DNA from: Phyllobates terribilis
Taxonomy: Eukaryota
Assembly: GCF_046119375.1 (NCBI RefSeq)
Contig: NW_027362771.1
Span: 590,364,001 to 590,428,000 of the forward strand
DNA: 64,000 nt
Direction: 5' to 3'
Made by a program: the position numbers and the translations under genes. Under the pieces are notes generated by a model, which had not been told where the DNA came from, did not search any database, and worked only from the letters and a program-made list of their open reading frames with translations. Positions 1-47,989 of the stretch are shown piece after piece (positions within the stretch are counted from its first letter, which is position 1; every line of letters begins with the position of its first letter).

Positions 1-3000
1 TGGGCTCTGTATGGGGGTGATGTGTGGGCTCTGTATGGGGGTGATGTGTGGGGGGCGCTGTATGGGGGTGATGTGTGGGGGGCGCTATATGGGGGTGATG
101 TGTGGGGGCGCTGTATGGGGGTGATGTGTAGGGGCGCTGTATGGAGGTGATGTGTGGGCTCTGTATGGGGGTGATGTGTGGGCGCTGTTTTGGGGGTGAT
201 GTGTGGGCTCTGTATGGGGGTGATGTGTGGGCGCTGTATGGGGGTGATGTGTGGGCGCTGTTTTGGGGGTGATGTATGGGCTCTGTATGGGGGTGATGTG
301 TGGGCACTGTATGGGGGTGATGTGTGGGCTCTGTATGGGGGTGATGTGTGTTCTCTGTATGGGGGTGATGTGTGGGCTCTGTATGGGGGTGATGTGTGGG
401 CGCTGTATGGGGGTGATGTGTGTGGGCGCTGTATGGGGGTGATGTGTGGGGGCGCTGTATGGGGGTGATGTGTGGGGGCGCTGTATGGGGGTGATGTGTG
501 GGGGCGCTGTATGGGGGTGATGTGTGGGGGCTCTGTATGGGGGTGATGTGTGGGCTCTGTATGGGGGTGATGTGTGGGCGCTGTTTTGGGGGTGATGTGT
601 GGGCTCTGTATGGGGGTGATGTGTGGGTGCTGTATGGGGGTGATGTGTGTGGGTGCTGTATGGGGGTGATGTGTGGGGGTGCTGTATGGGGGTGATGTGT
701 GGGGGCGCTGCATGGGGATGGTGTGTGGGGGAGCTGTATGGGGGTGATGTGTGGGCTCCGTATGGGGGTGATGTGTGGGCGCTGTTTTGGGGGTGATGTG
801 TGGGCGCTGTTTTGGGGGTGATGTGTGGGCTCTGTATGGGGGTGATGTGTGGGCTCTGTATGGGGGTGATGTGTGGGCTCTGTATGGGGGTGATGTGTGG
901 GGGCGCTGTATGGAGGTGATGTGTGGGCTCTGTATGGGGGTGATGTGTGGGCTCTGTATGGGGGTGATGTGTGGGCTCTGTATGGGGGTGATGTGTGGGC
1001 TCTGTATGGGGGTGATGTGTGGGCTCTGTATGGGGGTGATGTGTGGGGGGCGCTATATGGGGGTGATGTGTGGGCGCTGTTTTGGGGTGATGTGTGGGCG
1101 CTGTTTTGGGGGTGATGTGTGGGCTCTGTATGGGGGTGATGTGTGGGCTCTGTATGGGGGTGATGTGTGGGGGCGCTGTATGGAGGTGATGTGTGGGCTC
1201 TGTATGGGGGTGATGTGTGGGCTCTGTATGGGGGTGATGTGTGGGCTCTGTATGGGGGTGATGTGTGGGCGCTGTTTTGGGGGTGATGTGTGGGCGCTGT
1301 TTTGGGGGTGATGTGTGGGCTCTGTATGGGGGTGATGTGTGGGCGCTGTTTTGGGGGTGATGTGTGGGCTCTGTATGGGGGTGATGTGTGGGCGCTGTTT
1401 TGGGGGTGATGTATGGGCTCTGTATGGGGGTGATGTGTGGGCTCTGTATGGGGGTGATGTGTGGGCTCTGTATGGGGGTGATGTGTGGGCGCTGTTTTGG
1501 GGGTGATGTGTGGGCACTGTATGGGGGTGATGTGTGGGCACTGTATGGGGGTGATGTGTGGGCTCTGTATGGGGGTGATGTGTGGGCTCTGTATGGGGGT
1601 GATGTGTGGGCTCTGTATGGGGGTGATGTGTGGGCTCTGTATGGGGGTGATGTGTGGGGGCGCTGTATGGGGGTGATGTGTGGGGTCGCTGTATGGGGGT
1701 GACGTGTGGGCTCTGTATGGGGGTGACGTGTGGGCGCTGTTTTGGGGGTGACGTGTGGGCGCTGTTTTGGGGGTGATGTGTGGGCTCTGTATGGGGGTGA
1801 TGTGTGGGCTCTGTATGGGGGGTGATGTGTGGGTGCTGTTTTGGGGGTGATGTGTGGGCTCTGTATGGGGGTGATGTGTGGGCGCTGTATGGGGGTGATG
1901 TGTGGGCGCTGTATGGGGGTGATGTGCGGGCGCTGTATGGGGGTGATGTGTGGGGGCGCTGTATGGGGGTGATGTGTGGGGGCGCTGTATGGGGGTGATG
2001 TGTGGGGGCGCTGTATGGGGGTGATGTGTGGGGGCGCTGTATGGGGGTGATGTGTGGGGGCGCTGTTTTGGGGGTGACGTGTGGGCTCTGTATGGGGGTG
2101 ATGTGTGGGCTCTGTATGGGGGGTGATGTGTGGGTGCTGTTTTGGGGGTCATGTGTGGGTGCTGTTTTGGGGGTCATGTGGGGGCTCTGTATGGGGGTGA
2201 TGTGTGGGGGCGCTGTATGGGGGTGATGTGTGGGGGCGCTGTATGGGGGTGACGTGTGGGCTCTGTATGGGGGTGACGTGGGGGCGCTGTTTTGGGGGTG
2301 ACGTGGGGGCGCTGTTTTGGGGGTGACGTGGGGGCTCTGTATGGGGGGTGACGTGTGGGCTCTGTATGGGGGTGATGTGTGGGTGCTGTTTTGGGGGTGA
2401 TGTGTGGGCGCTGTATGGGGGTGATGTGCGGGCGCTGTATGGGGGTGATGTGCGGGCTCTGTATGGGGGTGACGTGTGGGCGCTGTTTTGGGGGTGACGT
2501 GTGGGCTCTGTATGGGGGTGATGTGTGGGCTCTGTATGGGGGTGATGTGTGGGCTCTGTATGGGGGGTGATGTGTGGGTGCTGTTTTGGGGGTGATGTGT
2601 GGGTGCTGTTTTGGGGGTGATGTGTGGGCTCTGTATGGGGGTGATGTGTGGGCGCTGTATGGGGGTGATGTGTGGGCGCTGTATGGGGGTGATATGTGGG
2701 GGCGCTGTATGGGGGTGATGTGTGGGGGCGCTATATGGGGGTGATGTGTGTGGGCTCTGTATGGGGGTGACGTGTGGGCTCTGTATGGGGGTGACGTGTG
2801 GGCCCTGTTTTGGGGGTGATGTGTGGGCTCTGTATGGGGGTGATGTGTGGGCTCTGTATGGGGGTGATGTGTGGGTGCTGTTTTGGGGGTGATGTGTGGG
2901 TGCTGTTTTGGGGGTGATGTGTGGGTGCTGTTTTGGGGGTGATGTGTGGGCTCTGTATGGGGGTGATGTGTGGGCTCTGTATGGGGGTGATGTGTGGGCT

Positions 3001-3211
3001 CTGTATGGGGGTGATGTGTGGGAGCGCTGTATGGGGGTGATGTGTGGGAGCGCTGTATGGGGGTGATGTGCAGGCGCTGTATGGGGGTGATGTGCGGGCT
3101 CTGTATGGGGGTGATGTGTGGGAGCGCTGTATGGGGGTGATGTGCGGGCGCTGTATGGGGGTGATGTGTGGGCTCTGTATGGGGGTGATGTGCGGGCGCT
3201 GTATGGGGGTG
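1..3211. repeat. G-rich minisatellite, 24-bp unit (TGGGCTCTGTATGGGGGTGATGTG) with 26-bp variants; runs off the window start
   Basis: Period 24 read directly (tgggct at 1 and 25). ORF track shows 8-aa repeats (GGDVWALY). Confidence 0.97.
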
Positions 3212-4332
3212 AGGATGAGCCTTTCTTCTGCCTCTCAGCCGCCATCACACACTGATGAGATGTTTTCCTCCTTATTGAGGGGAAAGTGATGTAGGAGCTG
3301 CAACGCCCCCCTGTGCTGTATTATTACGGGGGGGCTCTGTGCACTTAGTGGGGGGGCGTCTCCTGATGGGAGAATAACTTGTATCCAGACGCCGCGCAGA
3401 GTTGTTCTTGGCTTCCAGAAGGACTCGGTCGTCCATCCAGGATAAATGTTATTTCTCCCACATCCATCCTCCAGGGCTGGCAGCCGCTTCTCAGCTGCTC
3501 CTCTCTTGAAATACTCTGTGCTGCTGGGACCTCTGCTCCATCATAGTCCGTTCTTCATCCCCTCCTTCATCACCCATGACACATACCCAGCGTCACTGTC
3601 ATGCACAGGACCATCTCATTTTTTTTCTCCTGAAATACTCTGTGCTGCTGTAAAACCTGTCTTCTTCTAAAGCCGACTCTCCGTCCCTCCCTCCAGTTAT
3701 GACACTGCCCCTGCCACAAGCAGACCTGCCGTTCCTTACAAATGCATTACATGGGTGAACAGCTCACTTGCCCCCAAGCTTCTGTTCACCCCTCTCCTGA
3801 AATACTCTGCACCGCTGAGAACCCCGCTTCTCTGCCATATTATAGGGGCATCTGGAACCGATGCTGACTCTGGCTCTGGGGACATTGGAAGGGCAACCGC
3901 AACACTTATGGGGCAATTATTGCTGGGAAACACCACTGTCGCCCTGTGGGTTCGTTGGCACAGCTTGGAGATGACGCATCGAGCAGATAAGATCCGAACC
4001 GTGCAGAGAAAGTTCATGTCTGGGCAACTTCTGCCATAACATCACGATGCGAGGAATGTGCCTCCAGAGATGTCAGGTGTAACCCGAAAATAAAAAGAAA
4101 TCTTCCTAAGATCGCCCTGTGCGGCCCCACACGTACCCCCCACAGCCATACTCAGCGTCCCCATCAGAGCTCACTGAATTACTGCCTGGAATATCGGCCA
4201 TTGGATGTGTCCGTGGAAATGTGAGAGATCAAGACAGGAAGTGTTGTCATAGGGAAAAAAAACTGTAAAGAAAAAAAAATCCAGCTCCACGGAAATACAA
4301 ACCTCCTCTTTACTGGTGTGAATAGAGCACCT

Positions 4333-7440: not shown

Positions 7441-7739
7441 ATGCGCCAACCAATCCTGGACTAGGGATCGCAGCGTCATCAAGCCGAGGTCCCATGATCT
7501 CAACTCCGAGACAAATATACAGCAAACCAATAAGATCTCAGCATCATGGAAACAGTGATCACATGACCACGGCCATAATATCTCTATATAACTCTATTAT
7601 AGACATATAAAATCAAATGGCTTAATGTGGAATACAATATACTTGGGTGTCTGTTCTGAATTGTATGGGATGATTATGTCTTGATCACTTTATCATACAG
7701 TGGCTTGTTTTTTACTTTCATTTGTCATTTTATATCACC

Positions 7740-11432: not shown

Positions 11433-14400
11433 GGAACAATGAGGTGGAATAAGATTCTACAGGTGAACAACTGGCTACGTCGATGGTGCCGTCAACAAGG
11501 ATTTGGATTTCTGGATCACGGAATGAATTACCTATACGATGGACTACTTGCTAGAGATGGGGTGCACCTTACGAAGACTGGAAAACATGTATTTGGAAGT
11601 CGCCTTGCCACACTCATCAGAAGAGCTTTAAACTAGAACAATGTGGGAAGGGAAGCAAAAGGCCAGAAAAAGCCATACAGCTGACAAATACTATTGAGAT
11701 CTCTGCTACTGGAAGTGGAAAGGAAGAACAAAGACAAAACAATTTAAATAATAAAAATATGGGAGGAAGAGAAACCAATCACAAACTAAAATGTTTTTAT
11801 ACAAATGCACAAAGCATGGGCAACAAACAAGGAGAATTGGAACTACTAACGCAGGAAAGGGAATATGATGTTATTGGAATCACTGAAACTTGGTGGGACG
11901 ATACACATGATTGGAATAAAAGGCTAAAAGGATACAACTTATTTGCAAGAAACAGACTTGATAAACGAGGAGGAGGTGTTGCATTGTATGTTAGAAAAGC
12001 GTATATCTGCACAGAGATTGAAGCTTCAGAGACTGGGAGTTCTGTGGAAACTGTTTGGGTAAGAATACAAGGAGAGAACAACGGAAAGGACACCATTGTA
12101 GGCATTTACTACAGGCCACCTGGGCAAGCTGAAGATATGGATGAACTCTTTATGTATCAAATGACCAAGTTCTCCAAAAAATATGACGTAGTGGTCATGG
12201 GAGATTTCAACTATCCAGACATTTGTTGGGAATCTCTCTCAAGTAAAACTAACAGGTCAAGCAAATTCTTATCCTCTCTTGCTGACAACTTTATCTTCCA
12301 AAAGGTAGGGGAGAAAACAAGGGGATCTGCTACTTTGGATCTAATCCTTATAAACAGGGAGGAAATGGTTGAGGAGGTAAAGGTGGCTGGGACCCTAGGA
12401 GGCAGCGATCATGCTATTATAGAATTTTGGATAACTAGAGGAGGAAGACATGTGAAGACTCAAACTTCAAGGTTAGATTTTAGAAAGGCAGATTTTAAGA
12501 GACTCAGAAAGAGAATAGGAGGGATCCAATGGCTGGATGTCCTTAAGGACAAAAATGTCCAGGAAGGATGGGAAATTTTTAAAAATGAGATTCTCAAAGC
12601 ACAATCGTTAACAATCCCAAAAAGTAGGAAGAATGGGAAGCATTTAAGGAAACCAGGATGGATGAACACAGAACTTAAACACATGCTAAAAAGAAAGAAA
12701 GAAATGTTTATTAAATGGAAAGAGGGAGGCATATCTAAAGAAGATTATAATGCAGTCTGCAGATCCTGCAGGGCACGTATCAGGTTAGCTAAAGCTGACA
12801 ATGAATTAAGGCTTGCAAGAGATGTCAAAAGCAATAAAAAAGGATTTTGGGGGTATGTCAAAAGTAAAAGAAAAGTCAAAGATGCTATAGGATTTTTACA
12901 GGATGAAAATGGAGAAATGGTAAGAGAGGATGTTGAGAAGGCCGAACTTTTTAATTCCTATTTTGCATCTGTTTTCTCTCAGAAAGAAAATGTAACATCA
13001 ACTGATCTTCACTGTCCTTTTAAAGGAATAGAGGAATCCAAGTTATCAGTAAACAGAAAGATTGTGAGGGAATATTTAGCTAACATAAATGAGTTCAAGT
13101 CTCCAGGTCCAGATGAATTACACCCCAGAGTACTGAAGGAGATTGTAGAAGAAATTTTAGAACCACTCTCCATAATCTTTGAAAATTCTTGGAGAACAGG
13201 AGAAGTCCCAGAAGACTGGAGAAGAGCAAATGTTGTTCCTATCTTCAAAAAGGGGAAGAAGGTGGACCCAGGGAACTATAGGCCGGTGAGTCTGACTTCT
13301 ATACCAGGAAAGATCTTTGAACAAATTATTAAACAACATGTATGTAAGTACATGGATAAGAATGAAGTGATTAACCAGAGTCAGCATGGGTTTGTAACTA
13401 ACAGGTCATGTCAGACTAACTTAATTTCCTTCTATGACAGAATCACTGACTGGGTGGATCAGGGAAATGCTGTAGATATAGTATATCTTGACTTCAGCAA
13501 AGCATTTGACAAAGTATCTCACATCATCCTTATTGAAAAAATGACCAAGTATGCAATGGACCAGGCAACTGTTAGGTGGATTCATAACTGGCTTAGTGAT
13601 CGGACTCAAAGGGTGGTTGTAAATGGCTTCACATCCAGCTGGATGAATGTCTCAAGTGGGGTACCACAGGGCTCCGTCCTGGGACCTGTATTGTTCAACA
13701 TCTTTATCAATGATTTAGATGAAGGAATTGAGGGTAAACTGATTAAATTTGCTGATGACACAAAGCTAGGAGGGATAGCTAATACTAGAGAAGAGAGAGA
13801 GAGGATTCAAAAAGACCTAAATAAACTGGAGCAGTGGGCAGCAACCAACAGAATGGTTTTTAACAGGGAAAAATGCAAAGTACTACATCTGGGCAATAAA
13901 AATGAAAAAAGCATATACAGAATGGGAGGAATAGCGCTAAGCAACAGTACATGTGAAAAAGACTTAGGTATACTAATAGATCATAGACTGAACATGAGTC
14001 AACAGTGTGATGCAGCAGCAAAAAAGGCAAATACAATTCTGGGATGTATTAACAGAAGCATACAGTCTAGATCACGTGAAGTCATTATCGGTCTTTACTC
14101 CTCTTTGGTCAGACCTCATCTGGAATACTGTGTACAGTTTTGGGCACCACATTTTAAAAAAGACATAGACAAACTGGAGCAAGTTCAGAGAAGAGCGACC
14201 AGAATGGTGACTGGTCTGCAAACCATGTCCTATGAGGAACGGTTGCAGGATTTGGGAATGTTTAGCTTGCAAAAAAGAAGACTGAGAGGAGACTTAATAG
14301 CTGTCTACAAATATGTCAAGGGCTGTCACATTGTAGAAGGATCATCTTTATTCTCATTTGCACAAGGAAAGACTAGAAGCAATGGGATGAAACTAAATGG

Positions 14401-14630
14401 GAGGAGACACAGATTAGATATTAGAAAAAACTTTTTGACAGTTAGGGTGATTAATGAGTGGAACAGGCTGCCACGAGAGGTGGTGAGTTCCCCTTCAATG
14501 GACGTCTTCAAACAGAGGCTGGACAGACATCTGTCTGAGATGATCTAGTGAATCCTGCTTTGAGCAGGGGGTTGGACCAGATGACCCAGGAGGTCCCTTC
14601 CAACTCTACCATTCTATGATTCTATGATTC
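11432..14630 (+). mobile_element. 5'-truncated CR1 LINE (copy 1)
   Basis: Starts inside the ORF1 esterase C-terminus; full ORF2; 3' tail of ATTCTATG repeats; probable TSD GCCACT(G) at 11427 and 14634. Confidence 0.96.
11759..14548 (+). CDS. CR1 ORF2, AP-endonuclease plus reverse transcriptase, 929 aa, uninterrupted
   Basis: EN motifs YTNAQS, GITETWW, GDFN, SDH; RT motifs GVPQGSVLGP and FADD. Confidence 0.97.
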   Translation: MGGRETNHKLKCFYTNAQSMGNKQGELELLTQEREYDVIGITETWWDDTHDWNKRLKGYNLFARNRLDKRGGGVALYVRKAYICTEIEASETGSSVETVWVRIQGENNGKDTIVGIYYRPPGQAEDMDELFMYQMTKFSKKYDVVVMGDFNYPDICWESLSSKTNRSSKFLSSLADNFIFQKVGEKTRGSATLDLILINREEMVEEVKVAGTLGGSDHAIIEFWITRGGRHVKTQTSRLDFRKADFKRLRKRIGGIQWLDVLKDKNVQEGWEIFKNEILKAQSLTIPKSRKNGKHLRKPGWMNTELKHMLKRKKEMFIKWKEGGISKEDYNAVCRSCRARIRLAKADNELRLARDVKSNKKGFWGYVKSKRKVKDAIGFLQDENGEMVREDVEKAELFNSYFASVFSQKENVTSTDLHCPFKGIEESKLSVNRKIVREYLANINEFKSPGPDELHPRVLKEIVEEILEPLSIIFENSWRTGEVPEDWRRANVVPIFKKGKKVDPGNYRPVSLTSIPGKIFEQIIKQHVCKYMDKNEVINQSQHGFVTNRSCQTNLISFYDRITDWVDQGNAVDIVYLDFSKAFDKVSHIILIEKMTKYAMDQATVRWIHNWLSDRTQRVVVNGFTSSWMNVSSGVPQGSVLGPVLFNIFINDLDEGIEGKLIKFADDTKLGGIANTREERERIQKDLNKLEQWAATNRMVFNREKCKVLHLGNKNEKSIYRMGGIALSNSTCEKDLGILIDHRLNMSQQCDAAAKKANTILGCINRSIQSRSREVIIGLYSSLVRPHLEYCVQFWAPHFKKDIDKLEQVQRRATRMVTGLQTMSYEERLQDLGMFSLQKRRLRGDLIAVYKYVKGCHIVEGSSLFSFAQGKTRSNGMKLNGRRHRLDIRKNFLTVRVINEWNRLPREVVSSPSMDVFKQRLDRHLSEMI

Positions 14631-18691: not shown

Positions 18692-20342
18692 CAGTTATAT
18701 GAAAAAGTTTGGGCACCCCTATTAATCTTAAGCTTAATGTTTTATAAAAATTGGTGTTTTTGCAACAGCTATTTCAGTTTGATATATGTAATAACTGTTG
18801 GACACAGTAATGTTTCTGCCTTGAAATCAGGTTTATTGTACTAACAGAAAATGTGCAATCTGCATTCAAACAAAATTTGACAGGTGCATAAGTATGGGCA
18901 CCCTTATCATTTTCTTGTTTTAAATACTCCTACCTACTTTTTACTGACTTACTAAAGCACTTTTTTTGGTTTTGTAACCTCATTGAGCTTTGAACTGCAT
19001 AGCCAGGTGTATGCAATCATGAGAAAAGCTACTTAAAGTGGCCACTTGCAAGTTGTTCTCCTGTTTGAATCTCCTCTGAAGAGTGGCATCATGGGCTCCT
19101 CAAAACAACTGTCAAATGATCTGAAAACAAAAGATTATTCAACATAGTTGTTCAGGGGAAGGATACAAAAAGCTGTCTCAGAGATTTAACCTGTCAGTTT
19201 CCACTGTGAGGAACATAGTAAGGAAATGGAAGAACACAGGGACAGTTCTTGTTAAGGCCAGAAGTGGCAGGCCAAGAAAAACATCAGAAAGGCAGAGAAG
19301 AAGAATGGTGAGATCAGTCAAGGACAATCCTCAGACCACCTCCAGAGAGCTGCAGCATCAACTTGCTGCAGATGGTGTCTCTGTGCATCGGTCAACTATA
19401 CAATGCACTTTGCACAAGGAGAAGCTGTATGGGAGAGTGATTCAAAAGAAGCCGTTTCTGCAAGCACGCCACAAACAGAGTCGGCTGAGGTATGCAAAAG
19501 CACATTTGGAGAAGCCAATTTCTTTTTCGAAGAAGGTCCTGTGGACTGATGAAACCAAGATTGAGTTGTTTGGTCATACAAAAAGGCGTTATGCATGGCG
19601 GCAAAAAAACACAGCATTCCAAGAAAAACACTTGCTACCCACAGTAAAATTTGGTGGAGGTTCCATCATGCTTTGGGGCTGTGTGGCCAATGCCGGCACC
19701 GGGAATCTTGTTAAAGTTGAGGGACGCGTGGATTCCACTCAGTATCAGCAGATTCTTGACAATAATGTTCAAGAATCAGTGATAAAGTTGAAGTTACGCA
19801 GGGGATGGATCTTTCAGCAAGACAATGATCCAAAACAACGCTTCAAATCTACTCAGGCATTCATGCAGAGGAACAATTACAATGTTCTGGAATGGCCATC
19901 CCAGTCCCCAGACCTGAATATCATTGAACATCTGTGGGATCATTTGAAGAGGGCTGTCCATGCTCGGCGACCATCAAACTTAACTGAACTGGAATTGTTT
20001 TGTAAAGAGGAATGGTCAAAAATACCTTCATCCAGGATCCAGGAACTCATTAAAAGCTACAGGAAGCGACTAGAGGCTGTTATTTTTGCAAAAGGAGGAT
20101 CTACTAAATATTAATGTCACTTTTCTGGTGAGGTGCCCATACTTATGCACCTGTCAAATTTTGTTTGAATGCAGATTGCACATTTTCTGTTAGTACAATA
20201 AACCTCATTTCAAGGCAGAAACATTACTGTGTCCAACAGTTATTACATATATCAAACTGAAATAGCTGTTGCAAAAACACCATTTTTTATAAAACATTAA
20301 GATTAAGATTAATAGGGGTGCCCAAACTTTTTCATATGACTG
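18692..20342 (+). mobile_element. Tc1-family DNA transposon, 1651 bp, long (~210 bp) TIRs
   Basis: TA TSD at both ends; TIR CAGT(T/C)ATATGAAAAAGTTTGGGCACCCC; transposase inside. Confidence 0.96.
19091..20114 (+). pseudogene. Tc1 DD34E transposase with one +1 frameshift near codon 14
   Basis: MGSSKQLSNDLKTK, then an extra A in an A-run, then IIQHSCSGEGYKK; GRPRK, WTDETK, QQDNDPK-x34-E all present. Confidence 0.88.
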
Positions 20343-20752: not shown

Positions 20753-21463
20753 CATTTTTTATGCAAGTTTTCAGCTGCGTTTTACAGTACCAGCAAAGTC
20801 TATGAGATTCCAGAAATCTCATGCACACATCATGGTTATTTTTTTGTTCAGTATTTTGTGCTTTGTAGCTTAGTATGTTTTGTTTTTTTTGGCAAAATAT
20901 AGCATGTCACTTCTTTCAGAGTTTTTTCACCCATAGGAAGTAATAGGTGGTGAAAAAAAACACTGAAAAAAATGCACCAAAAACACAGTTGACTTTTTTT
21001 TCAGCGTTTTTGGTGCCAAAATAGAATGAGATTTTTTTTTTTGCTGCAGATTTTCACACAAAAAAAAATGCAGTGGAAAAAATGCAACGTTTACGCTACG
21101 TGGGAACACGGCCTAAACGTCCTACTTAGGACGCACCTGCACCGGCCTACTAGCACACAACTTTGAAGGGTCACTGGTGCAAAACGTACCAGTCTTCCCA
21201 GGGCGCAGCACGCAGATATGTAAATAGATCCATAAAACTCTATGGGTCTTTGTGCCGTCGGTCGTGTGTGAACGCAGCCTTACCACAGTCCCTTCTCGGT
21301 TTCAGTAGTGCAGACCTGGACGGTAAAACCGGTGAAAATCAATACAGGGCTTGTGGTCCAAAATCAGGACTTTATGGCTGATCTGTACCGGGGGAGGATG
21401 TAAAGAGCAGGACGCTCGGATTGACTTCATCATCTTGATCGATGGTCTCTCTTCTCTTCTCAG

Positions 21464-21602
21464 GCTTCTCACAAGGAGACAATAACTGGAAATATTGTCC
21501 GGACTGTAGAAGATTACTCAAGGATGCCAATATGAATGATCGATTTTATCAAAATCTGGTTGAAAATGCCACATATACAGCCTGTCCCCGAAATATCGCC
21601 AG
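21464..21602 (+). CDS. cxcl16: CXCL16-like chemokine copy A, exon encoding the N-terminal half of the chemokine domain (phase 1 to 2)
   Basis: Acceptor ctctcttctcttctcag, donor AG|gtaaga; FSQGDNNWKYCPDCRRLLKDANMNDRFYQNLVENATYTACPRNIA(R). Confidence 0.8.
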
Positions 21603-21758
21603 GTAAGAGATGTCTATGTATACAGGGGCTCCGTCCTCCAGTAGAAAACCTCGGATGTGATGGCCCATCCTATATATCCTGCCAGTGAGCGGTGGACACC
21701 TCTTGTCTCTGCCTCATCCTTGGTTCTATCTCTCGGTCTTCTCATCACTCTTTTTCAG

Positions 21759-21838
21759 ATTTGTGCTACCAGGAGGAATCTTCTGTGGAAAAAGAGGACA
21801 ATCATGGGTGGAAAATGTCATCAGCTGCATTAACCAGG
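21759..21838 (+). CDS. cxcl16: CXCL16-like copy A, next exon (phase 2 to 1)
   Basis: Acceptor ctttttcag, donor G|gtgaga; (R)FVLPGGIFCGKRGQSWVENVISCINQ resembles recalled human CXCL16 RFQLLSWSVCGGNKDPWVQELMSCLD. Confidence 0.82.
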
Positions 21839-22027
21839 GTGAGATTCCCCATCTGCTGCAGCAATAAGACCATGGATGTAGAGAAGGAAATCATCACCGA
21901 TGGGCAAAGATTGTCCCTGAGGAAGTTCTGTCACCTCCGAGGATATAATCACTTGTCCAATCTAGAACTTTATTACTTTCAGTTGTGACTATACAATAAT
22001 GAGAAATACAGAATAGATAATAGGTAG

Positions 22028-22611
22028 TGTAAGGAGGCGGTGTTCACACTGTGCAGTAACTGAGGCAGTGACCCAAGCAAGTCCAACATATGCAGCTTTT
22101 ATTCAGCAGACTCACGGGTAAACAGAAAAGTCCTCGAGTTCGCAGCCCTGTTAACACAAGTCCATAACAACGGTTGCCGTGGGCAATGGCCGCGCCAGGC
22201 CGCTCAGAGCCTGACAGGTGCAGAGCCTTCCCAGGCGGGGGTTCAGCTACTCACAGATCCGCAAAGCTTCCTGCTATGCTCCTAGCAGGTCCCAACACTG
22301 AACAACACTAATCCTTAGTGCAGGGTTTTTAAAGGACCTGTGGCAAGAGCCACTGAAAAACCCGGGTTGGAGGAAGGAGGCCGCCCCACTGCCTTCCTGT
22401 AGCCTCCTCCAAGAAATGAAGGCCCTGCCGGGTTTTACTTAATCTGCCTTAGCCAGATAGCCTGACCAGGTCAATGCACACCTTCATTCCTGCATCACAG
22501 CCGCAGCTGTGTCTGTGACTACAATGCACTCCAATGGATTTAATAGGTCTCTGTACACATTCTGGGGGATATATAACGTCCCTCGTATACGATCCCAGTC
22601 ACTGCCTCACA
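22028..22611 (-). mobile_element. Solo LTR-like element (584 bp) in the intron of copy A
   Basis: TG..CA ends, AATAAA on the minus strand, near-TSD GTAG/ATAG. Confidence 0.6.
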
Positions 22612-22689
22612 ATAGATAATAGATGATAGATAATAGATGATAGATAATAGATGGATAATAGATAATAGATAGATAATAGATAGGTGATA
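22612..22689. repeat. GATA-type compound microsatellite abutting the gap
   Basis: atagataatagatgatagata.. read directly. Confidence 0.9.
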
Positions 22690-23078
22690 NNNNNNNNNNN
22701 NNNNNNNNNNNNNNNNNNNNNNNNNNNNNNNNNNNNNNNNNNNNNNNNNNNNNNNNNNNNNNNNNNNNNNNNNNNNNNNNNNNNNNNNNNNNNNNNNNNN
22801 NNNNNNNNNNNNNNNNNNNNNNNNNNNNNNNNNNNNNNNNNNNNNNNNNNNNNNNNNNNNNNNNNNNNNNNNNNNNNNNNNNNNNNNNNNNNNNNNNNNN
22901 NNNNNNNNNNNNNNNNNNNNNNNNNNNNNNNNNNNNNNNNNNNNNNNNNNNNNNNNNNNNNNNNNNNNNNNNNNNNNNNNNNNNNNNNNNNNNNNNNNNN
23001 NNNNNNNNNNNNNNNNNNNNNNNNNNNNNNNNNNNNNNNNNNNNNNNNNNNNNNNNNNNNNNNNNNNNNNNNNNNNNN
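22690..23078. other. Assembly gap (389 N)
   Basis: Run of N. Confidence 0.99.
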
Positions 23079-23097
23079 CTTGGTCTCCTCTTTGCAG

Positions 23098-23292
23098 GTA
23101 GACTACCTTGTCCAAAAACTTCTGAGAACCAGCAAGATTTCTCCAAAGGCTCCAACAACAAACCGCCCTCAATCACCCAAGAAACCACAACATCTACAAC
23201 CAAAGCAGCTCCATCTCCGGGACAGTCCATACAGACCTTGGAAGGCAGAACACAGAAGGAACCTTCACATCAGAATAATGGCGTACGACAGG
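23098..23292 (+). CDS. cxcl16: CXCL16-like copy A, sixth Cys plus mucin-like stalk exon; 3' end uncertain (candidate donor after 23292, otherwise reads to TGA at 23421-23)
   Basis: Acceptor tctcctctttgcag; phase 1 gives GRLPCPKTSENQQDFSKGSNNKPPSITQETTTSTTKAAPSPGQSIQT. Link to the upstream exons crosses the N gap. Confidence 0.65.
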
Positions 23293-23461
23293 GTACGGAA
23301 GGGCCACATATCATGGGAAGGACTGAGGGTGGGGTGTCATCTTTATGGAGATTAGGCTTCATTCCCAGTCCTAGTTGTGCACGAAGCTTTAAAGGACTAC
23401 TGGTGAACCACGTCACGGTCTGACCACTGCACGCGACAGTCCTACTTTGGGATGAGGGCTG

Positions 23462-23591
23462 GCGTCTCACAAGGAGGCAATCTTTGTCAAGATTGTAAAA
23501 AATTACTCAAGGATTCCGATGTGACGGAACTATTCTATCAGATTCTGATCAAAAATGCAAAATATACATCCTGCTTACACAATATCTCCAG
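23462..23591 (+). pseudogene. cxcl16: CXCL16-like copy B, N-terminal chemokine exon; no splice acceptor
   Basis: VSQGGNLCQDCKKLLKDSDVTELFYQILIKNAKYTSCLHNIS(R); donor AG|gtaaga intact; preceded by gagggctg rather than a pyrimidine tract plus AG. Confidence 0.72.
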
Positions 23592-24298
23592 GTAAGAGAG
23601 ATATATACGTATCCGGCGGTTCTAGATCCTTCCTCCAATTGGGATGGCACATCCTATATATCCTGCCGGTGAGTGACGTGCCCCCTGGGGCCGTGGGGTA
23701 CTCAGAAGCCGGGCCGGTCGGCTCTATTGGGGTAGTCACGGTGGCGTGACCCAGTCCGTGGCCCAGGGCGGTCAATAAACAAAGAAAAGAGGGGAATAAA
23801 GTTTTGGGGGTAAAGTTTCGTCACGCCACCAATGGTATGCGGCTATAGGTGGCCGCCGCTGTTCAGATCCACTGGGGCCGTTGGTGACTGGGGACCGTTT
23901 GCTAGCTGAGTCTTGCAGTCCTCCACTAGTTTGGGGCCGGTCCCCTACTGCGACCTGATCCTTTCACGGTCAGCGTGAACTCGGGCGCACGGGTGGACTC
24001 CGCACTTCCCGTGCCCCTAAGATTCTTTCTCTGTCTATGAAGTCCTTCTCACTGCTCCGGTCTTCTCTCTCCACACCAGGAGGCGGGTCCCCCTGGCTGA
24101 TGGACAAGTCTATTGATATGGCCGTCGTTGCAAAGAGCGGGCATGGCTCTTCGCACCATTCTGTAGCCCGGCCCACGATGGGAGGCTGCTTAACTTCCTT
24201 GGACATACACATGGCGCTTGTTCTTTCTGGTCGGGCGCCACTACTCAGTCTCAAACACAGTCTCTGGGCGCACGAGACCTGGTGTAATGGGTCGGTAC

Positions 24299-24316
24299 AT
24301 CCTGTTCGTGACGCCA
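24299..24316 (-). promoter_or_regulatory. Primer binding site, tRNA-Ser(CGA) type
   Basis: Minus strand TGGCGTCACGAACAGGAT, 4 nt after the LTR end; complementary to the recalled tRNA-Ser(CGA) 3' end ATCCTGTTCGTGACG-CCA. Confidence 0.8.
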
Positions 24317-24970
24317 AGTTTGACGTGCCCCCTGGGGCCGTGGGGTACTCGGAAGCCGGGCTGGTCGGTTCTATTGGGGTAGTCACGGTGCCGTGACCCG
24401 GTACGTGGCCCAGGGCGGTCAATAAATAAAGAAAAGAGGGGAATAAAGTTTTGGGGGTAAAGTTTCGTGAGTCAACCCGTGATATGCAGCTATAGGTGGC
24501 CGCCGCTGCTGTTCAGATCCACTGGGGCCTTGGTGACGCAGCAGAGATAGTTCAGCTCTCCACGGGTAGAGCTAGGCCCCAGGGCAGTAAAATAGGTAGG
24601 CTTTGATGTTGTTGGTGTAGTGCAAGGCAGGTGACGCAGCAATTAAGTCAAGGACACAGCGGGGTGCAGTCTTCAAGTTGTACTCACAGCTTTCACGGTG
24701 CTCCAGGTTACAACTGCTAGCCATGTTATAACAGCCCACCGAGTCCTGTCTCCTCCGGGGAAGTGATCCAGCCAACTCTCAGATAACTTGATTGCACTTG
24801 ATCGGGACCCCCTTCTTGTGCACCTTCCCGGGTCGTCTCTCTGCGCTGGCTCTCGCCCTCCTGCCCTGTGCCTCACAAACAGTGTCCCGAGCCAGTGGCC
24901 CCGGGCCTTGTCGTGCGACGTCCTCTCTGTCCCCTTGGTCCTATATGACCACTTCTTCAGGGAACGTGTG

Positions 24971-26252
24971 TGTAACATCCCTGGCGGCGTGCTGGCATGG
25001 TTTACCACCTCCCACCATGCAAGACCGCCATCTTACCTATCAGTCCAGGCTGCACACTTTGCTCCAGTATGTGCTGTGTGCATGTCTCTTGTCTGATTGC
25101 TTAGGGCGGCGGCGCTGTTACTGCCTGATTCTTAAACTTACAGTGTGTGCAGTCCTAATGCCTCCCCAGCCTATTGCTGTGAGTCACTGGATACTTAAAC
25201 CCCCTCCACCCAGTAGGAGGTGCCTAAGCAACACTTTCTTTCAGTGTGTTCTGTGCAACTGAGTTGCCAGGTCCTGTCCTGTATCTTGTCTGTTCAGCCA
25301 CCCTGGGGGCTGTATACACAGGCCCGTTACCTGTATCTGTGACTTCTAGTCTGTTTCCGCCACCCTGGGGGCTGAGTTCCCAGGCTCGTTCCTGTATCTT
25401 GTTCCTGGTTCAGTTCATGTCTTATCAGTGTCCTAGCCCGTTACTTGTCTGTCTCCATGTTCGTATCTTCCCTTTTCCTGCAGTGTCTGAACCTGCACGT
25501 AACTCCAACTCGTTGTCTCTGTATTTCTGTTTGTGAGTTTAGTGTCCACTCGCTACTTCATTGTAAGTACCTTGTGTGTATCTGCTCTGCTTGTCTACCG
25601 CACCTGCGGTTTTGCTCTTCTCTGCTTGTCTACCGCACCTGCGGGTTTTGCTCTGCTCTGCTTGTCTACCGCACCTGCGGGTTTTACTCTGCTTTGCTTG
25701 TCTACCCCGCCTGCGGGTTTTGCTCTGCTCTGCTTGTCAACCGCATCTGCGAGTTTTGCTCTGCTCTGCTTGTCTACAGCACCTGCGGGTTTTGCTCTGC
25801 TTTGCTCGTCTACCGCGCCTGCGGCTCTGTTCCTGTATCCCAGTCTGTACTGGTTCCTATCCTGCCTGAGTTCCTACCTGCCAGTATCTACCTGCCTGTA
25901 TACCAGCCGTGCGTGCCAATACCCACCTGTCTGCATACCAGCCGTGCCTGCCAATACCCATCTGTCTGCATACCAGATGTGCCTGCCAGTAGCTACCTGT
26001 CAGTATGCCAGCCTAATCGGCCTGTTCCTGCATTCCCCGGTGGGTCAACAGCTGTGACCGGGGTCTGACCTGGAGTAGCACCTGGTCCCTCTGCTCGGTT
26101 CCTCCCTGGTTCACGGAGTCGACTGAGCCGCCGTGCGACCTTGGTCGGACCGAGTTGATACTTAGTCACGCCCCTCCAGGCACTCCTCGGTTCATGGTCC
26201 AGTGTGATCACTAACCACGCTCACGCCAGTCAGTCGGGGCGTGTGCGCAACA
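24971..26252 (+). mobile_element. Solo LTR (1282 bp), related to the LTRs at 31055 and 34671, nested in the previous element
   Basis: TGTAAC..AACA; perfect 5-bp TSD GTGTG; internal 36-bp tandem repeat. Confidence 0.88.
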
Positions 26253-26997
26253 GTGTGTGATTTTTGGCTACGGCACTTAGAGATACCGCAGCCTCCGGTT
26301 TGCTAGCTGAGTCTTGCAGTCCTCCACTAGTCTGGGGCCAGTCCTCTACTGCGACCTGATACTTTCACAGTCGGCGTGAACTCGGGCACATGGGTGGACT
26401 CCGCACTTCCCATGCCCCTAAGTAAGATCCTTTCTCTGTCTCTGGAGCCCTTCTCACTGCTCCGGTCTTCTCTCTTCACTCCCTGTGACGGACTCCTGTC
26501 ACTGACTGCTCTGACTAACTAACTCTTCGACGGTCCACACTCACTGCGCTCTTGCTCCTAGGATCCTTCTAGATTTTTCTACCTTTCCTTTTATACTACC
26601 TGTCACGTGACCCACGTCACCAACTATCACTCTACGTGGTCCCCTCTACCTTCAGTCCTTCCTTTAGTGCTCCCCTAAACTACTTCCTCCACCCACCTCC
26701 TCTACCTAGTTCCCCCCTCCAGACAGAGACAGGGACTGTGCTCTCCCTCAGGAGCAATCTCGCCCTTCCCTACTGGAGTGATGTGGTGTTGGATGTGAGT
26801 GGTTGGGTCCCAGGTAGTGCTCTCTCCTTACCCGAGAGTGAGGTACCACACCTCTGGCTGAGATGGAGTACCTCTGTGGCGATTAGACCTGCAGCGGCGC
26901 CACATGAGCAGAGGACACCTCTTGTCTTTGCTCCATCCTTGGCTCTATCTCTCTGTCTTCTCACCACTTTTTTGTATATTTTTCCTCACATTTTCAG

Positions 26998-27077
26998 ATT
27001 TCAGCTACTGGGAGAAGTCTTCTGTGGCCACATAGCTGAATCATGGGTGGACAAAGTCACCGGGTGCATAATAAAGG
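26998..27077 (+). CDS. cxcl16: CXCL16-like copy B, second chemokine exon (80 bp, phase 2 to 1)
   Basis: Acceptor cattttcag, donor G|gtgaga; (R)FQLLGEVFCGHIAESWVDKVTGCIIK, with RFQLL identical to recalled human CXCL16. Confidence 0.82.
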
Positions 27078-27204
27078 GTGAGATTCTCCATCTGCTTTAG
27101 AAATAAGACTATTTATACAGAGGATGAATATTTCTTGTCAAGAAATACATCACATTACAATAGGTATTTTGTCACTTCTAATAATCTTGGTCTCCTCTTT
27201 GCAG

Positions 27205-27474
27205 GTAGACAACCTTGTCTTCAGTCGCTTTAGTTCCAGCTTTTTCCAAAGGCTTCAACAAGAAGTCGCCCTTAACCAAACAAAAAAATCTCAATTTCTA
27301 CAACCAAAACAGCTCCATCTCTGGGACAGTCCATACAGACCTTGGAAGGAGGAACACAGAAGTCTTCAGCGTCTACTAATAAAAATCCCGGTACCACAAA
27401 GAAATCCATAAAGGCCACCATAGGTCCCACCACCATAGCAGCAGGCCCACATCAGAATAATGACCTACTTGATG
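27205..27474 (+). pseudogene. cxcl16: CXCL16-like copy B stalk exon with early stop (GRQPCLQSL*) and a +1 frameshift
   Basis: Same acceptor as 23098; colinear with the copy A stalk; TAG after 9 codons; extra A in caaaaaaatc; candidate donor G|gtacag after 27474. Confidence 0.7.
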
Positions 27475-27509
27475 GTACAGAGGGGCCATAGACCACGGGG
27501 TGGACCATC

Positions 27510-27745
27510 TATCAGACAAGCTTACCATCTATAAGGCTAGCTTATCGTCTATAAGGCAAGCTTACATCTATAAGGCAAGCTTACAATCTATAAGGCAAGC
27601 TTACATCTATAAGGCAGGTTTTCCATCTATAAGGCAAGCTTACATCTATAAGGCAAGCTTGTCATCTATAAGGCAATCTTACATCTATAAGGCTAGCTTA
27701 TCATATATAAGGCAAGATTACCATCTATAAGGCAAGCTTACAATT
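27510..27745. repeat. 19-20-bp tandem repeat (CATCTATAAGGCAAGCTTA), about 12 copies
   Basis: Read directly. Confidence 0.92.
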
Positions 27746-27781
27746 TTGGGGGTCAGCATGATTAGAACAACACCAAATGTA

Positions 27782-27825: not shown

Positions 27826-28164
27826 ATAGTTTTGCTACTTTTCCAAAATGAAAAAAAACTTTAAAAAATAGTTTGTGTTATATATTCTTGCAATTTATTT
27901 TTCGCTTGATAGAGTTTTTGATAGCGCCATTTTGGAGTAACATGACTATTTGATCACTAAGGTATTCTAGAAAATAAAACCTGTCACAGTGTGATCAATG
28001 CATTGTCACCAGGGGCATTGCTAGTGTTTTAAAAGATCAGGCGCCCAAGCTCCAATGTACAGGGAGAGGGACAAATACAGTGTAATTGTGCCCTTACTGA
28101 AGCCCCTTTATGTTTTCATCCACTGCGATACCTTTGACATGGCCCCCAAAGTGAGACCCCCCCC

Positions 28165-29367
28165 ACAGTATGATGTCCCCCACAGCCCACCTATATACAG
28201 TATGATGCCCCACAGCCCCCTTACATACAGTATGATGTCCCCGCATACAGTAAGATTTTCCCACAGCTCTCTATGTACAGTATGATGTCCCCACCACTCC
28301 CTATATACAATATGAAGTCCCCTCATCTCCCTATATACAATATAATGGTACCCACAGCTCCCTATATACAATATAATGGTACCCACTGCTCTCTATATAC
28401 AGTGTGATGTTCTCACATCTCAAAATTCACAATATCATGAACCACAAATCTTCCTATATAAGTTATGATGCCCCACACAATTCGCTATATGCAATATAAT
28501 ATCCCTTATTTCTCCCTTATATACAGTATGATACTCCACAGCTCCTTACATAAAGTATAATGACCCAGAGCTCTCTATATAGTATGAGGCCCCCTATAAA
28601 CAGAGTGATGGCCTCCACAGCTCCGTATATACAGTATGATAGTCACCACAGCTCGTTATACACAGTATAATGGCCACACAGTGCCCTATATATAGTTTGA
28701 TGCCCAACAGCTCCCTATATTCAGTTTGATGCCTCACAGGTTCCTATATACAGTATGATGCCCCCATAGCTCCGTACATACAGTATGATGCCCCCATAGC
28801 TCCCTACTTACAGTAGGATGCCCCAATAGCTTTCTATTTACAATATGATGCCCCCATAGCTCCCTATGTACAGTATGATGCCCCCATAGCTCCCTACATA
28901 CTGTATGATGCCCCCATATCTCCCTATCTACAGTTTGATCCCCCCATATCTCCCTATGTACAGTATGATGCCCCCATATCTCCCTATGTACAGTATGATG
29001 CCCCCATATCTCCCTATCTACAGTTTGATCCCCCCATATCTCCCTATGTACAGTATGATCCCCCCATATCTCCCTATGTACAGTATGATGCCCCCATATC
29101 TCCCTATGTACAGTATGATGCCCCCATAGCTCCCTACATACTGTATGATGCCCCCATATCTCCCTATCTACAGTTTGATCCCCCCATATCTCCCTATGTA
29201 CAGTATGATGCCCCCATATCTCCCTATGTACAGTATGATGCCCCCATAGCTCCCTACATACTGTATGATGCCCCCATATCTCCCTATCTACAGTTTGATC
29301 CCCCCATATCTCCCTATGTACAGTATGATGCCCCCATATCTCCCTATGTACAGTATGATGCCCCCAT
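28165..29367. repeat. 30-bp minisatellite (TATGATGCCCCCATATCTCCCTATGTACAG), degenerate on the left, homogeneous from about 28850
   Basis: Unit counted; 10-aa repeats WGHHTVHREI in the ORF track. Confidence 0.93.
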
Positions 29368-29539
29368 AGATGGATAAATGGATCAAAGAACAGGAATATC
29401 CCAAACAATTAGAATCATATACTGTACTTACAAGAAGGTTGAAGAAATTTGTGAAACAGATTGTTTAAAAATAAGAATAAATGGTAATGAAAACATCCCA
29501 ACAAACTTCTACAATCTTATTACAACCTGGAACAATTCA

Positions 29540-45199: not shown

Positions 45200-47989
45200 A
45201 TGGGAGGAAGAGAAACCAATCACAAACTAAAATGTTTTTATACAAATGCACAAAGCATGGGCAACAAACAAGGAGAATTGGAACTACTAACGCAGGAAAA
45301 GGAATATGATGTCATTGGAATCACTGAAACTTGGTGGGACGATACACATGATTGGAATAAAAGGCTAAAAGGATACAACTTATTTGCAAGAAACAGACTT
45401 GATAAACGAGGAGGAGGTGTTGCATTGTATGTTAGAAAAGCGTATATCTGCACAGAGATTGAAGCTTCAGAGACTGGGAGTTCTGTGGAAACTGTTTGGG
45501 TAAGAATACAAGGAGAGAACAACGGAAAGGACACCATTGTAGGCATTTACTACAGGCCACCTGGGCAAGCTGAAGATATGGATGAACTCTTTATGTATCA
45601 AATGACCAAGTTCTCCAAAAAATATGACGTAGTGGTCATGGGAGATTTCAACTATCCAGACATTTGTTGGGAATCTCTCTCAAGTAAAACTAACAGGTCA
45701 AGCAAATTCTTATCCTCTCTTGCTGACAACTTTATCTTCCAAAAGGTAGGGGAGAAAACAAGGGGATCTGCTACTTTGGATCTAATCCTTATAAACAGGG
45801 AGGAAATGGTTGAGGAGGTAAAGGTGGCTGGGACCCTAGGAGGCAGCAATCATGCTATTATAGAATTTTGGATAAATAGAGGAGGAAGACATGTGAAGAC
45901 TCAAACTTCAAGGTTAGATTTTAGAAAGGCAGATTTTAAGAGACTCAGAAAGAGAATAGGAGGGATCCAATGGCTGGATGTCCTTAAGGACAAAAATGTC
46001 CAGGAGGGATGGGAAATTTTTAAAAATGAGATTCTCAAAGCACAATCGTTAACAATCCCGAAAAGTAGGAAGAATGGGAAGCATTTAAGGAAACCAGGAT
46101 GGATGAACACAGAGCTTAAACACATGCTAAAAAGAAAGAAAGAAATGTTTATTAAATGGAAAAAGGGAGGCATATCTAAAGAAGATTATAATGCAGTCTG
46201 CAGATCCTGTAGGGCACGTATCAGGTTAGCTAAAGCTGACAATGAATTAAGGCTTGCAAGAGATGTCAAAAGCAATAAAAAAGGATTTTGGGGGTATGTC
46301 AAAAGTAAAAGAAAAGTCAAAGATGCTATAGGATTTTTACAAGATGAAAATGGAGAAATGGTAAGAGAGGATGTTGAGAAGGCCAAACTTTTTAATTCCT
46401 ATTTTGCATCTGTTTTCTCTCAGAATGAAAATGTAACATCAACTGATCTTCACTGTCCTTTTAAAGGAATAGAGGAATCCAAGTTATCTGTAAACAGAAA
46501 GATTGTGAGGGAATATTTAGCTAACATAAATGAGTTCAAGTCTCCAGGTCCAGATGAATTACACCCCAGAGTACTGAAGGAGATCGTAGAAGAAATTTTA
46601 GAACCACTCTCCATAATCTTTGAAAATTCTTGGAGAACAGGAGAAGTCCCAGAAGACTGGAGAAGAGCAAATGTTGTTCCTATCTTCAAAAAGGGGAAGA
46701 AGGTGGACCCAGGGAACTATAGGCCGGTGAGTCTGACTTCTATACCAGGAAAGATCTTTGAACAAATTATTAAACAACATGTATGTAAGTACATGGATAA
46801 GAATGAAGTGATTAACCAGAGTCAGCATGGGTTTGTAACTAACAAGTCATGTCAGACTAACTTAATTTCCTTCTATGACAGAATCACTGACTGGGTGGAT
46901 CAGGGAAATGCTGTAGATATAGTATATCTTGACTTCAGCAAAGCATTTGACAAAGTATCTCACACCATCCTTATTGAAAAAATGACCAAGTATGCAATGG
47001 ACCAGGCAACTGTTAGGTGGATTCATAACTGGCTTAGTGATCGGACTCAAAGGGTGGTTGTAAATGGCTTCACATCCAGCTGGATGAATGTCTCAAGTGG
47101 GGTACCACAGGGCTCCGTCCTGGGACCTGTATTGTTCAACATCTTTATCAATGATTTAGATGAAGGAATTGAGGGTAAACTGATTAAATTTGCTGATGAC
47201 ACAAAGCTAGGAGGGATAGCTAATACTAGAGAAGAGAGAGAGAGGATTCAAAAAGACCTAAATAAACTGGAGCAGTGGGCAGCAACCAACAGAATGGTTT
47301 TTAACAGGGAAAAATGCAAAGTACTACATCTGGGCAATAAAAATGAAAAAAGCATATACAGAATGGGAGGAATAGAGCTAAGCAACAGTACATGTGAAAA
47401 AGACTTAGGTATACTAATAGATCATAGACTGAACATGAGTCAACAGTGTGATGCAGCAGCAAAAAAGGCAAATACAATTCTGGGATGTATTAACAGAAGC
47501 ATACAGTCTAGATCACGTGAAGTCATTATCGGTCTTTACTCCTCTTTGGTCAGACCTCATCTGGAATACTGTGTACAGTTTTGGGCACCACATTTTAAAA
47601 AAGACATAGACAAACTGGAGCAAGTTCAGAGAAGAGCGACCAGAATGGTGACTGGTCTGCAAACCATGTCCTATGAGGAACGGTTGCAGGATTTGGGAAT
47701 GTTTAGCTTGCAAAAAAGAAGACTGAGAGGAGACTTAATAGCTGTCTACAAATATGTCAAGGGCTGTCACATTGTAGAAGGATCATCTTTATTCTCATTT
47801 GCACAAGGAAAGACTAGAAGCAACGGGATGAAACTAAATGGGAGGAGACACAGATTAGATATTAGAAAAAACTTTTTGACAGTTAGGGTGATTAATAAGT
47901 GGAACAGGCTGCCACGAGAGGTGGTGAGTTCCCCTTCAATGGACGTCTTCAAACAGAGGCTGGACAGACATCTGTCTGAGATGATCTAG
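45200..47989 (+). CDS. CR1 ORF2, 929 aa, open, with the endonuclease SDH motif changed to SNH
   Basis: Same motifs as 11759-14548; GGSNHA here versus GGSDHA in copy 1. Confidence 0.97.
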   Translation: MGGRETNHKLKCFYTNAQSMGNKQGELELLTQEKEYDVIGITETWWDDTHDWNKRLKGYNLFARNRLDKRGGGVALYVRKAYICTEIEASETGSSVETVWVRIQGENNGKDTIVGIYYRPPGQAEDMDELFMYQMTKFSKKYDVVVMGDFNYPDICWESLSSKTNRSSKFLSSLADNFIFQKVGEKTRGSATLDLILINREEMVEEVKVAGTLGGSNHAIIEFWINRGGRHVKTQTSRLDFRKADFKRLRKRIGGIQWLDVLKDKNVQEGWEIFKNEILKAQSLTIPKSRKNGKHLRKPGWMNTELKHMLKRKKEMFIKWKKGGISKEDYNAVCRSCRARIRLAKADNELRLARDVKSNKKGFWGYVKSKRKVKDAIGFLQDENGEMVREDVEKAKLFNSYFASVFSQNENVTSTDLHCPFKGIEESKLSVNRKIVREYLANINEFKSPGPDELHPRVLKEIVEEILEPLSIIFENSWRTGEVPEDWRRANVVPIFKKGKKVDPGNYRPVSLTSIPGKIFEQIIKQHVCKYMDKNEVINQSQHGFVTNKSCQTNLISFYDRITDWVDQGNAVDIVYLDFSKAFDKVSHTILIEKMTKYAMDQATVRWIHNWLSDRTQRVVVNGFTSSWMNVSSGVPQGSVLGPVLFNIFINDLDEGIEGKLIKFADDTKLGGIANTREERERIQKDLNKLEQWAATNRMVFNREKCKVLHLGNKNEKSIYRMGGIELSNSTCEKDLGILIDHRLNMSQQCDAAAKKANTILGCINRSIQSRSREVIIGLYSSLVRPHLEYCVQFWAPHFKKDIDKLEQVQRRATRMVTGLQTMSYEERLQDLGMFSLQKRRLRGDLIAVYKYVKGCHIVEGSSLFSFAQGKTRSNGMKLNGRRHRLDIRKNFLTVRVINKWNRLPREVVSSPSMDVFKQRLDRHLSEMI

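Follow-up and report, generated by a model that had tools for sequence, protein, structure and literature searches.

How is a chemokine gene built when two residues, rather than none, one or three, separate the first two cysteines of its product, and is such a spacing real? The question is raised by a 64,000-nucleotide stretch of the genome of Phyllobates terribilis (NCBI RefSeq assembly GCF_046119375.1, contig NW_027362771.1, forward strand, positions 590,364,001 to 590,428,000), which at its full length is called the window here. Chemokines are classed as C, CC, CXC or CX3C by the spacing of their first two cysteines, and the N-terminal region of a chemokine activates its receptor. The window contains two sets of exons, termed modules A and B, that specify a C-x-x-C (CX2C) arrangement. 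We consider it likely that they form a dendrobatid-type CXCL16-like locus with a tandem three-exon block, in which A is intact and B is most likely a dead or dying module. Two exons of each block would encode the chemokine domain and one exon a mucin-like stalk. Module A (21464-23292) appears intact and would encode a six-cysteine domain with the chemokine fold. Module B (23462-27474) retains a complete chemokine domain, but its acceptor is missing, and it has an early stop, a frameshifted stalk and an insertion of 3.2 kb.

After splicing, both modules give the pattern C-x2-C-x25-C-x14-C-x13-C-x7-C. A opens with CPDC and B with CQDC, and S-W-V follows the fourth cysteine in both. The junction of exons 2 and 3 divides an Arg codon that is followed by Phe, and the junction of exons 3 and 4 divides a Gly codon, again in both modules. 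All six splice sites of A are canonical, as are the internal sites of B. The exon 2 boundary of A coincides with the start of homology to complementary DNA (cDNA) contigs of frogs, and the stalk of A comprises 60 residues, of which 38% are Ser, Thr or Pro. A tblastn search of the whole window with both peptides finds copies A and B only. An earlier reading of the same letters, called here the sequence-only reading, had given exon coordinates with junctions at 21602/21759 and 21838/23098; these are right, and canonical splice sites are present at those positions. The cysteine spacing that it had reported for both copies, together with W-V and the split between Arg and Phe, is likewise borne out by the spliced frames.

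The peptides of A and B most probably belong to the CXCL16 family, an assignment that is supported by matches of close relatives to Pfam family PF20902 (CXCL16) and by fold searches. Family membership rests on these relatives because single exons give only sub-threshold Pfam matches. The curated cut-off of PF20902 is 27 bits, and the exons of the window were scored one by one. Exon 3 of A alone gives a weak match of 15.7 bits (E 0.018), and exon 3 of B alone gives a weak match of 14.4 bits (E 0.046), both at profile positions 48-72 of 93. A profile built from the two exon 2 peptides was searched against 1.84 billion representative proteins, and it retrieved full-length frog proteins with a signal peptide, the domain itself, a stalk rich in Ser and Thr, a transmembrane (TM) helix and a tail. 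This first search found proteins of Ranitomeya, Anomaloglossus, Rhinoderma and Leptodactylus, and two later searches added Eleutherodactylus, Engystomops, Bufo, Dendrobates, Hyla, Dendropsophus, Phyllobates, Pyxicephalus and Hyperolius. The TM helix and tail are seen in relatives P0021, P0043, P0004 and P0007. Scores with PF20902 exceed the cut-off for P0028 (65.9 bits, in three stretches), P0007 (37.7 bits) and P0021 (31.8 bits), while P0043, the closest relative, lies under it at 19.1 bits.

Fold tests were run on residues 22-108 of P0043, which are 84% identical to A, and not on the spliced peptide of the window. The AlphaFold model of this segment has a predicted local distance difference test score (pLDDT) of 80 and contains three strands and a C-terminal helix. 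With VIA-align, the best 50 entries are all chemokines (Z 5.4-6.3). The best 28 Foldseek matches in the PDB are also all chemokines, but their E-values are weak (at least 0.045). Among Swiss-Prot predicted structures, five of the seven best matches are CXCL16 (rat, pig, mouse, cow and human), all with probability 1.00. A sequence profile matches CCL7 at an E-value of 5e-4, with the second cysteine of CX2C aligned to the second cysteine of CC; no solved CXCL16 structure is among the solved chemokines that the profile reaches. The chemokine fold that the sequence-only reading had expected is thus predicted, for a relative at 84% identity whose nearest predicted structures are mammalian CXCL16, and the CXCL16-like assignment made there agrees with the above-threshold PF20902 matches of close relatives and with the presence of CXCL16 among the best structural matches. 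CX3CL1 is ruled out as the parent family by its number of cysteines, by Pfam and by its rank in the structure searches. In a domain tree, A falls within the dendrobatid group beside Phyllobates (support 89/92), and B lies on a long branch outside that group.

Six cysteines are present in A and in B, as a CXCL16-type third disulfide requires. The expected pairs would be C1-C3 and C2-C4, which to our knowledge are found in every chemokine, plus a CXCL16-type third bridge, C5-C6. This pairing is supported by the loss of cysteines in pairs among relatives: in an alignment of 23 family sequences, C1 and C3 are missing together from P0002, and C5 and C6 from P0004, P0016 and P0017, which are the Anomaloglossus and both Eleutherodactylus copies. 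In the TM-type paralogue of Ranitomeya (P0001 of R. imitator and P0002 of R. variabilis), the first cysteine is replaced by Gly or Phe. The R. variabilis protein P0002 also lacks the third cysteine, and it would therefore have one canonical disulfide fewer.

The 23 aligned sequences come from 11 named hyloid and 2 ranoid genera, which we take to represent seven hyloid and two ranoid families. Exactly two residues lie between the C1 and C2 positions in every row, and cysteine occupies both positions in 21 of the 23. The second of the intervening residues is Asp or Glu in 18 rows, so that most relatives read C-x-[D/E]-C. The CXC class has one residue between the first two cysteines; here A has PD and B has QD at this place, and each of the 23 rows likewise has two residues. 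These observations support the view that CX2C is a conserved lineage trait of frogs, and they agree with the earlier claim that the spacing is not a sequencing error. Because the spacing is shared by the hyloids and ranoids sampled, it would date back at least to early Neobatrachia, in a sample of hyloids, ranoids and, as the one early-branching frog, Xenopus. In Xenopus, a pipid, Cxcl16 is stated to have CC (PMC8811506, PMC3568907), and the Xenopus sequences in the supplementary FASTA file of PMC8811506 do read CC.

The sequence-only reading had proposed an anuran CX2C lineage. The part of this proposal that stands is a lineage trait of the CXCL16 family, but the clade sampled is Neobatrachia and not all anurans, given CC in Xenopus. 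The proposed novelty also holds in part. RefSeq entries of Engystomops, Hyla and Dendropsophus that bear the name "C-X-C motif chemokine 16(-like)" already have CX2C, and no paper was found that discusses the spacing. Some public CX2C records carry that type of name, and most are called uncharacterized. A literature search on CX2C or CXXC chemokines and on frog CXCL16 did not turn up any account of this spacing. Lability of the spacing in the CXCL16 gene has already been noted for Xenopus, and neobatrachian CX2C is not described in any paper found.

The unit duplicated between A and B, as delimited by blastn, extends from the exon 2 boundary to about 30 nucleotides past the exon 4 donor, with homology starting at 21463 and 23461. 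Modules A and B are exon 2-4 blocks arranged in tandem at one locus, 169 nucleotides apart, and B is damaged. The earlier description of them as two diverged paralogues is not borne out. A comparable organization is found in R. variabilis, in which two models of LOC143774322, XP_077117901.1 (P0024) and XP_077117899.1 (P0028), comprise a signal peptide and three modules and have no TM helix. In both models the stalk end ...HQNNGV(Q/R)Q-G runs straight on into the VSQG... of the next module, with the same ends as in the window, and the last module ends four residues after the sixth cysteine. The short stalk of A and its end match modules 1 and 2 of P0028, including an internal shortening. This shared shortening and shared end make A the counterpart of the R. 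variabilis modules, and the arrangement in which exon 4 leads to exon 2 would predate the split of the two species, to judge from the sequences. The stalk of B is of the long type that is seen in TM-type genes.

Several observations weigh against an intact A beside a dead or dying B, and they are considered here with the alternatives on which they bear. The disulfide pairing is predicted from sequence, and the multi-module proteins of R. variabilis are computed gene models with XP_ accessions. None of the six cysteines and none of the family-invariant residues has been lost from B; the first stop of this module, TAG, stands five codons after the sixth cysteine, at the codon position where R. 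variabilis isoform X1 ends (RLPC plus four residues), and drift and frameshifts occur only downstream of this stop. Thus, B may be, or may recently have been, a working terminal module. The locus would then encode a secreted two-domain protein that ends just past the sixth cysteine of B, and the lack of AG would be explained by a wrong base in the assembly, by an allele or by an acceptor of non-canonical type. The boundary is indeed only one base off, with ctg/GC in B and cag/GC in A. We nevertheless regard this alternative as unlikely. The boundary lacks both AG and a pyrimidine tract, and a scan for AG upstream of B exon 2 found none that gives an in-frame, stop-free join, as each in-frame AG precedes a stop. 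Conservation between A and B does not rise in exons 2 and 3 (77% and 72.5% identity) above the level of the introns beside them (84%, 84% and 78%). When frog cDNAs serve as the third taxon, the branch to B has an omega of about 0.8-1.0 and that to A one of about 0.5-0.6; both estimates are based on 78 codons only. Intron 2 of B contains the 3.2 kb insertion, and the stalk after the TAG has a 4-nucleotide deletion and a 1-nucleotide insertion relative to A, followed by TAA. Module B is therefore most likely dead or dying. Another possibility is that A and B are two separate paralogous genes, each with its own CX2C chemokine. Their divergence (about 50% protein identity, dS about 0.44) and the six cysteines of each copy favor this explanation, but the 169 nucleotides from the donor of A to exon 2 of B leave no room for TM, tail, promoter and signal exons; no TM, tail or signal exons are found anywhere in the window, and the R. 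variabilis model joins such modules into one protein. Two separate genes are thus very unlikely.

The missing exons also raise the possibility that the whole locus is a relic and that A, too, is a non-functional CXCL16-like remnant among transposons. No convincing signal-peptide exon was found in the 64 kb by tblastn with six N-termini or by a pattern search in six frames, and tblastn with the C-termini of five relatives found no TM or cytoplasmic tail exon in the window. A candidate TM/tail exon at 7539-7586 was rejected as a chance match followed by a stop. Because these exons are not found in the 64 kb, A is not demonstrably part of a complete gene. The evidence for expression comes from other frogs: intron-free contigs of 1.2-1.5 kb in public RNA-type assemblies (L001-L004) carry whole CX2C coding sequences, which indicates that the family is transcribed and spliced in those frogs. 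What remains of the window is LINE (long interspersed nuclear element), Tc1 and retroviral sequence. However, all three exons of A are open, its six splice sites are canonical and none of the conserved residues is missing; A is 84% identical to a Phyllobates protein, and its branch omega of about 0.5 is like the family average. In addition, proteins encoded by frog cDNAs align to spliced A with no gaps across the inferred junctions. The genes of relatives span 14-41 kb and the genome is rich in repeats, so it is plausible that exon 1 lies more than 21 kb upstream of A, before the start of the window. We therefore judge a relic to be quite unlikely. A false duplication or a mis-join at the assembly gap in intron 3 of A could also have produced the A/B arrangement. 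The right edge of the gap is 19 nucleotides before the acceptor of A exon 4, the length of the gap is only estimated, and exon 4 is linked to exons 2 and 3 of A by scaffolding only. In contrast, exon 4 of A and exon 2 of B lie on one uninterrupted stretch, the same order of exon 4 and exon 2 occurs in the R. variabilis model, and the intron ends that flank the gap match the contiguous 127-nucleotide intron 3 of B (78% over 50 nucleotides at the 5' end and 18 of 18 nucleotides at the 3' end). The DNA of A and B differs by 20-30%, indels included, which argues against collapsed haplotypes and rules out mis-assembled haplotypes as the source of A and B. An assembly artefact is highly improbable. 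An intact A in tandem with a decayed B is the reading that we prefer.

The reading frame of A does not depend on the length of the gap, because the splice phases fix the frame and the gap is wholly within intron 3. The junction CINQ-G-RLPC of A is identical to that in the proteins of relatives. A GATA-type simple repeat borders the gap on its left, and this repeat is a plausible reason for the gap.

Further features of module B are apparent. Immediately before and into its exon 2, positions 23452-23475 read ATG AGG GCT G/GC GTC TCA, which corresponds to M-R-A-G-V-S-Q, and several relatives begin with M-R-A-P-G...P-Q-P-G/V-S-Q-G. The segment resembles an initiator ATG joined straight to exon 2 after loss of intron 1 and of the signal peptide's hydrophobic core, or it may be due to chance. 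No homology to the 5' ends of frog cDNAs that might represent an exon 1 remnant was found upstream of B exon 2. Within the intron 2 insertion, the sequence at about 23676-23825 recurs at 24322-24470, that at about 23898-24022 recurs at 26299-26425, and a run of tandem units of about 40 nucleotides occupies 25590-25830.

The tandem arrangement also suggests that dendrobatids might make secreted "poly-chemokines", in which two or three CX2C CXCL16-like domains are joined in series by short mucin linkers. We put this idea forward tentatively, as doubtful on present evidence. Such proteins would arise if the exon 2-4 block, whose phases are compatible, were duplicated; the window would represent an older, two-module version. 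No natural chemokine with chemokine domains in tandem is known to us, and a literature search for multiple or tandem chemokine domains found no protein described as having more than one. A search with P0024 for more proteins or transcripts of this multi-module kind retrieved nothing beyond its own two isoforms. Chemokines normally need a free N-terminus. As a matter of speculation, the internal modules of a multi-domain product would have none, and they might act by avidity or adhesion or need processing. Exon-block duplication suggests a route to multi-domain chemokines, and the tandem architecture is a more unusual lead than the spacing.

The domain of A would be secreted, displayed on its stalk or shed, and by analogy with mammalian CXCL16 it would engage frog CXCR6. 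Frogs retain CXCR6 with a DRF motif (bioRxiv 10.1101/2024.09.20.614078). The extra residue could affect receptor use, and the sequence-only reading had raised an altered CXCR6 pairing, or scavenger or antimicrobial roles, as possibilities. Across species, the number of intervening residues in the CXCL16 lineage is zero in Xenopus, one in mammals and two in neobatrachian frogs, a series that constitutes a natural test of how much weight the spacing has in CXCR6 recognition. As the CXCL16 orthologues demonstrate, the class label of a chemokine does not track ancestry. Neobatrachia contains most frog species, and CXCL16 acts at mucosal and skin barriers; a frog CXCL16-like gene is thus relevant to amphibian immunity.

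Most of the surrounding sequence resembles mobile elements. Six of the ten largest open reading frames (ORFs) of the window are LINE, Tc1/mariner or retroviral, and the other four match no Pfam family. Two 929-residue ORFs (11759-14545 and 45200-47986) contain Exo_endo_phos and reverse transcriptase domains and correspond to LINE ORF2. Tc1/mariner-type transposase ORFs with HTH_Tnp_Tc3_2 and DDE_3 domains are located at 19206-20111 (+) and 52069-53175 (-), the first of which has inverted ends on either side, near 18690 and 20340. An ORF at 58981-60513 encodes a retroviral-type reverse transcriptase and RNase H. Downstream of B exon 4 are tandem arrays (27500-27750 and 28100-29370) with units of about 20 nucleotides (ctataaggcaagcttacat) and about 40 nucleotides. 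Positions 1-4000 consist of strongly G-skewed, GC-rich repeats (GC skew 0.73 and 0.40) with long ORFs that have no Pfam match. In mammals the neighbors of CXCL16 are ZMYND15 and MED11, and synteny is altered outside mammals (bioRxiv 10.1101/2024.09.20.614078). The features of the locus itself are listed in Table 1.

Table 1. Exons and other features of the CXCL16-like locus, in window coordinates
Feature	Position	Strand	Remarks
Module A exon 2 (mature N-terminus, C-PD-C, third Cys)	21464-21602	+	open frame; ctcag/GC acceptor, AG/gtaaga donor
Module A exon 2 Cys codons	C1 21496-21498, C2 21505-21507, C3 21583-21585	+	
Module A exon 3 (beta strands and helix; fourth and fifth Cys; S-W-V)	21759-21838	+	canonical ag/gt sites
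Module A exon 3 Cys codons	start at 21784 and 21826	+	
Assembly gap (N run) inside intron 3 of module A	22690-23078	.	sole N run in the window
Module A exon 4 (sixth Cys 23109-23111; short mucin-like stalk, end ...HQNNGVRQ/G)	23098-23292	+	open frame; ttgcag/GT acceptor, G/gtacgg donor
Inter-module spacer, 169 nucleotides	23293-23461	+	no homology to sequence upstream of A, no usable acceptor; blastn and AG scan
Module B exon 2 (C-QD-C, Cys codons 23485-23487 and 23494-23496; third Cys)	23462-23591	+	preceded by ctg instead of ag
Insertion of about 3.2 kb with internal direct repeats, intron 2 of module B	23674-26904	.	A/B homology interrupted between 23673 and 26905
Module B exon 3 (fourth and fifth Cys, S-W-V)	26998-27077	+	canonical sites
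Module B exon 4 (sixth Cys 27216-27218; TAG 27231-27233; -4/+1 indel pair; TAA 27273-27275; long stalk remnant)	27205-27474	+	

Among known chemokines, mammalian CXCL16 (SR-PSOX) is a transmembrane, mucin-stalk CXC chemokine and the ligand of CXCR6. The frog sequences resemble it in the six-cysteine domain with a third bridge after the helix, in the order R-F-x-L...C-G...W-V...C, in the mucin-like stalk and, in the frog relatives, in the TM helix and short tail. They differ in having two residues instead of one between C1 and C2, and the window has no TM exon and a repeated exon block. Human CXCL16 has five residues between C5 and C6, and A and B have seven. In structural alignments, the frog domain and mammalian CXCL16 are 16-20% identical.

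Xenopus Cxcl16 (XP_002940089.2, and the L and S copies of X. laevis) is an amphibian orthologue with the same domain order, a shared stalk start, D-F-S-K-[GD]-S, and, like the frog sequences studied here, a departure from CXC; it differs in having CC where the window and all sampled neobatrachians have C-x-x-C. CX3CL1 (fractalkine) is also membrane-tethered on a mucin stalk, with an unusual spacing of the first cysteines and the same fold (Z 5.7-5.8). However, it has three intervening residues and only four cysteines, does not match PF20902 and ranks below CXCL16 in structure searches. The closest architecture is that of R. variabilis LOC143774322, whose RefSeq models are uncharacterized and in which the stalk end ...KEPSHQNNGV(Q/R)Q-G is followed directly by VSQG...C-QD-C and the terminal module stops four residues past the sixth cysteine. 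Its three modules are near-identical, whereas the window has two old, diverged modules, the second of which is without an acceptor.

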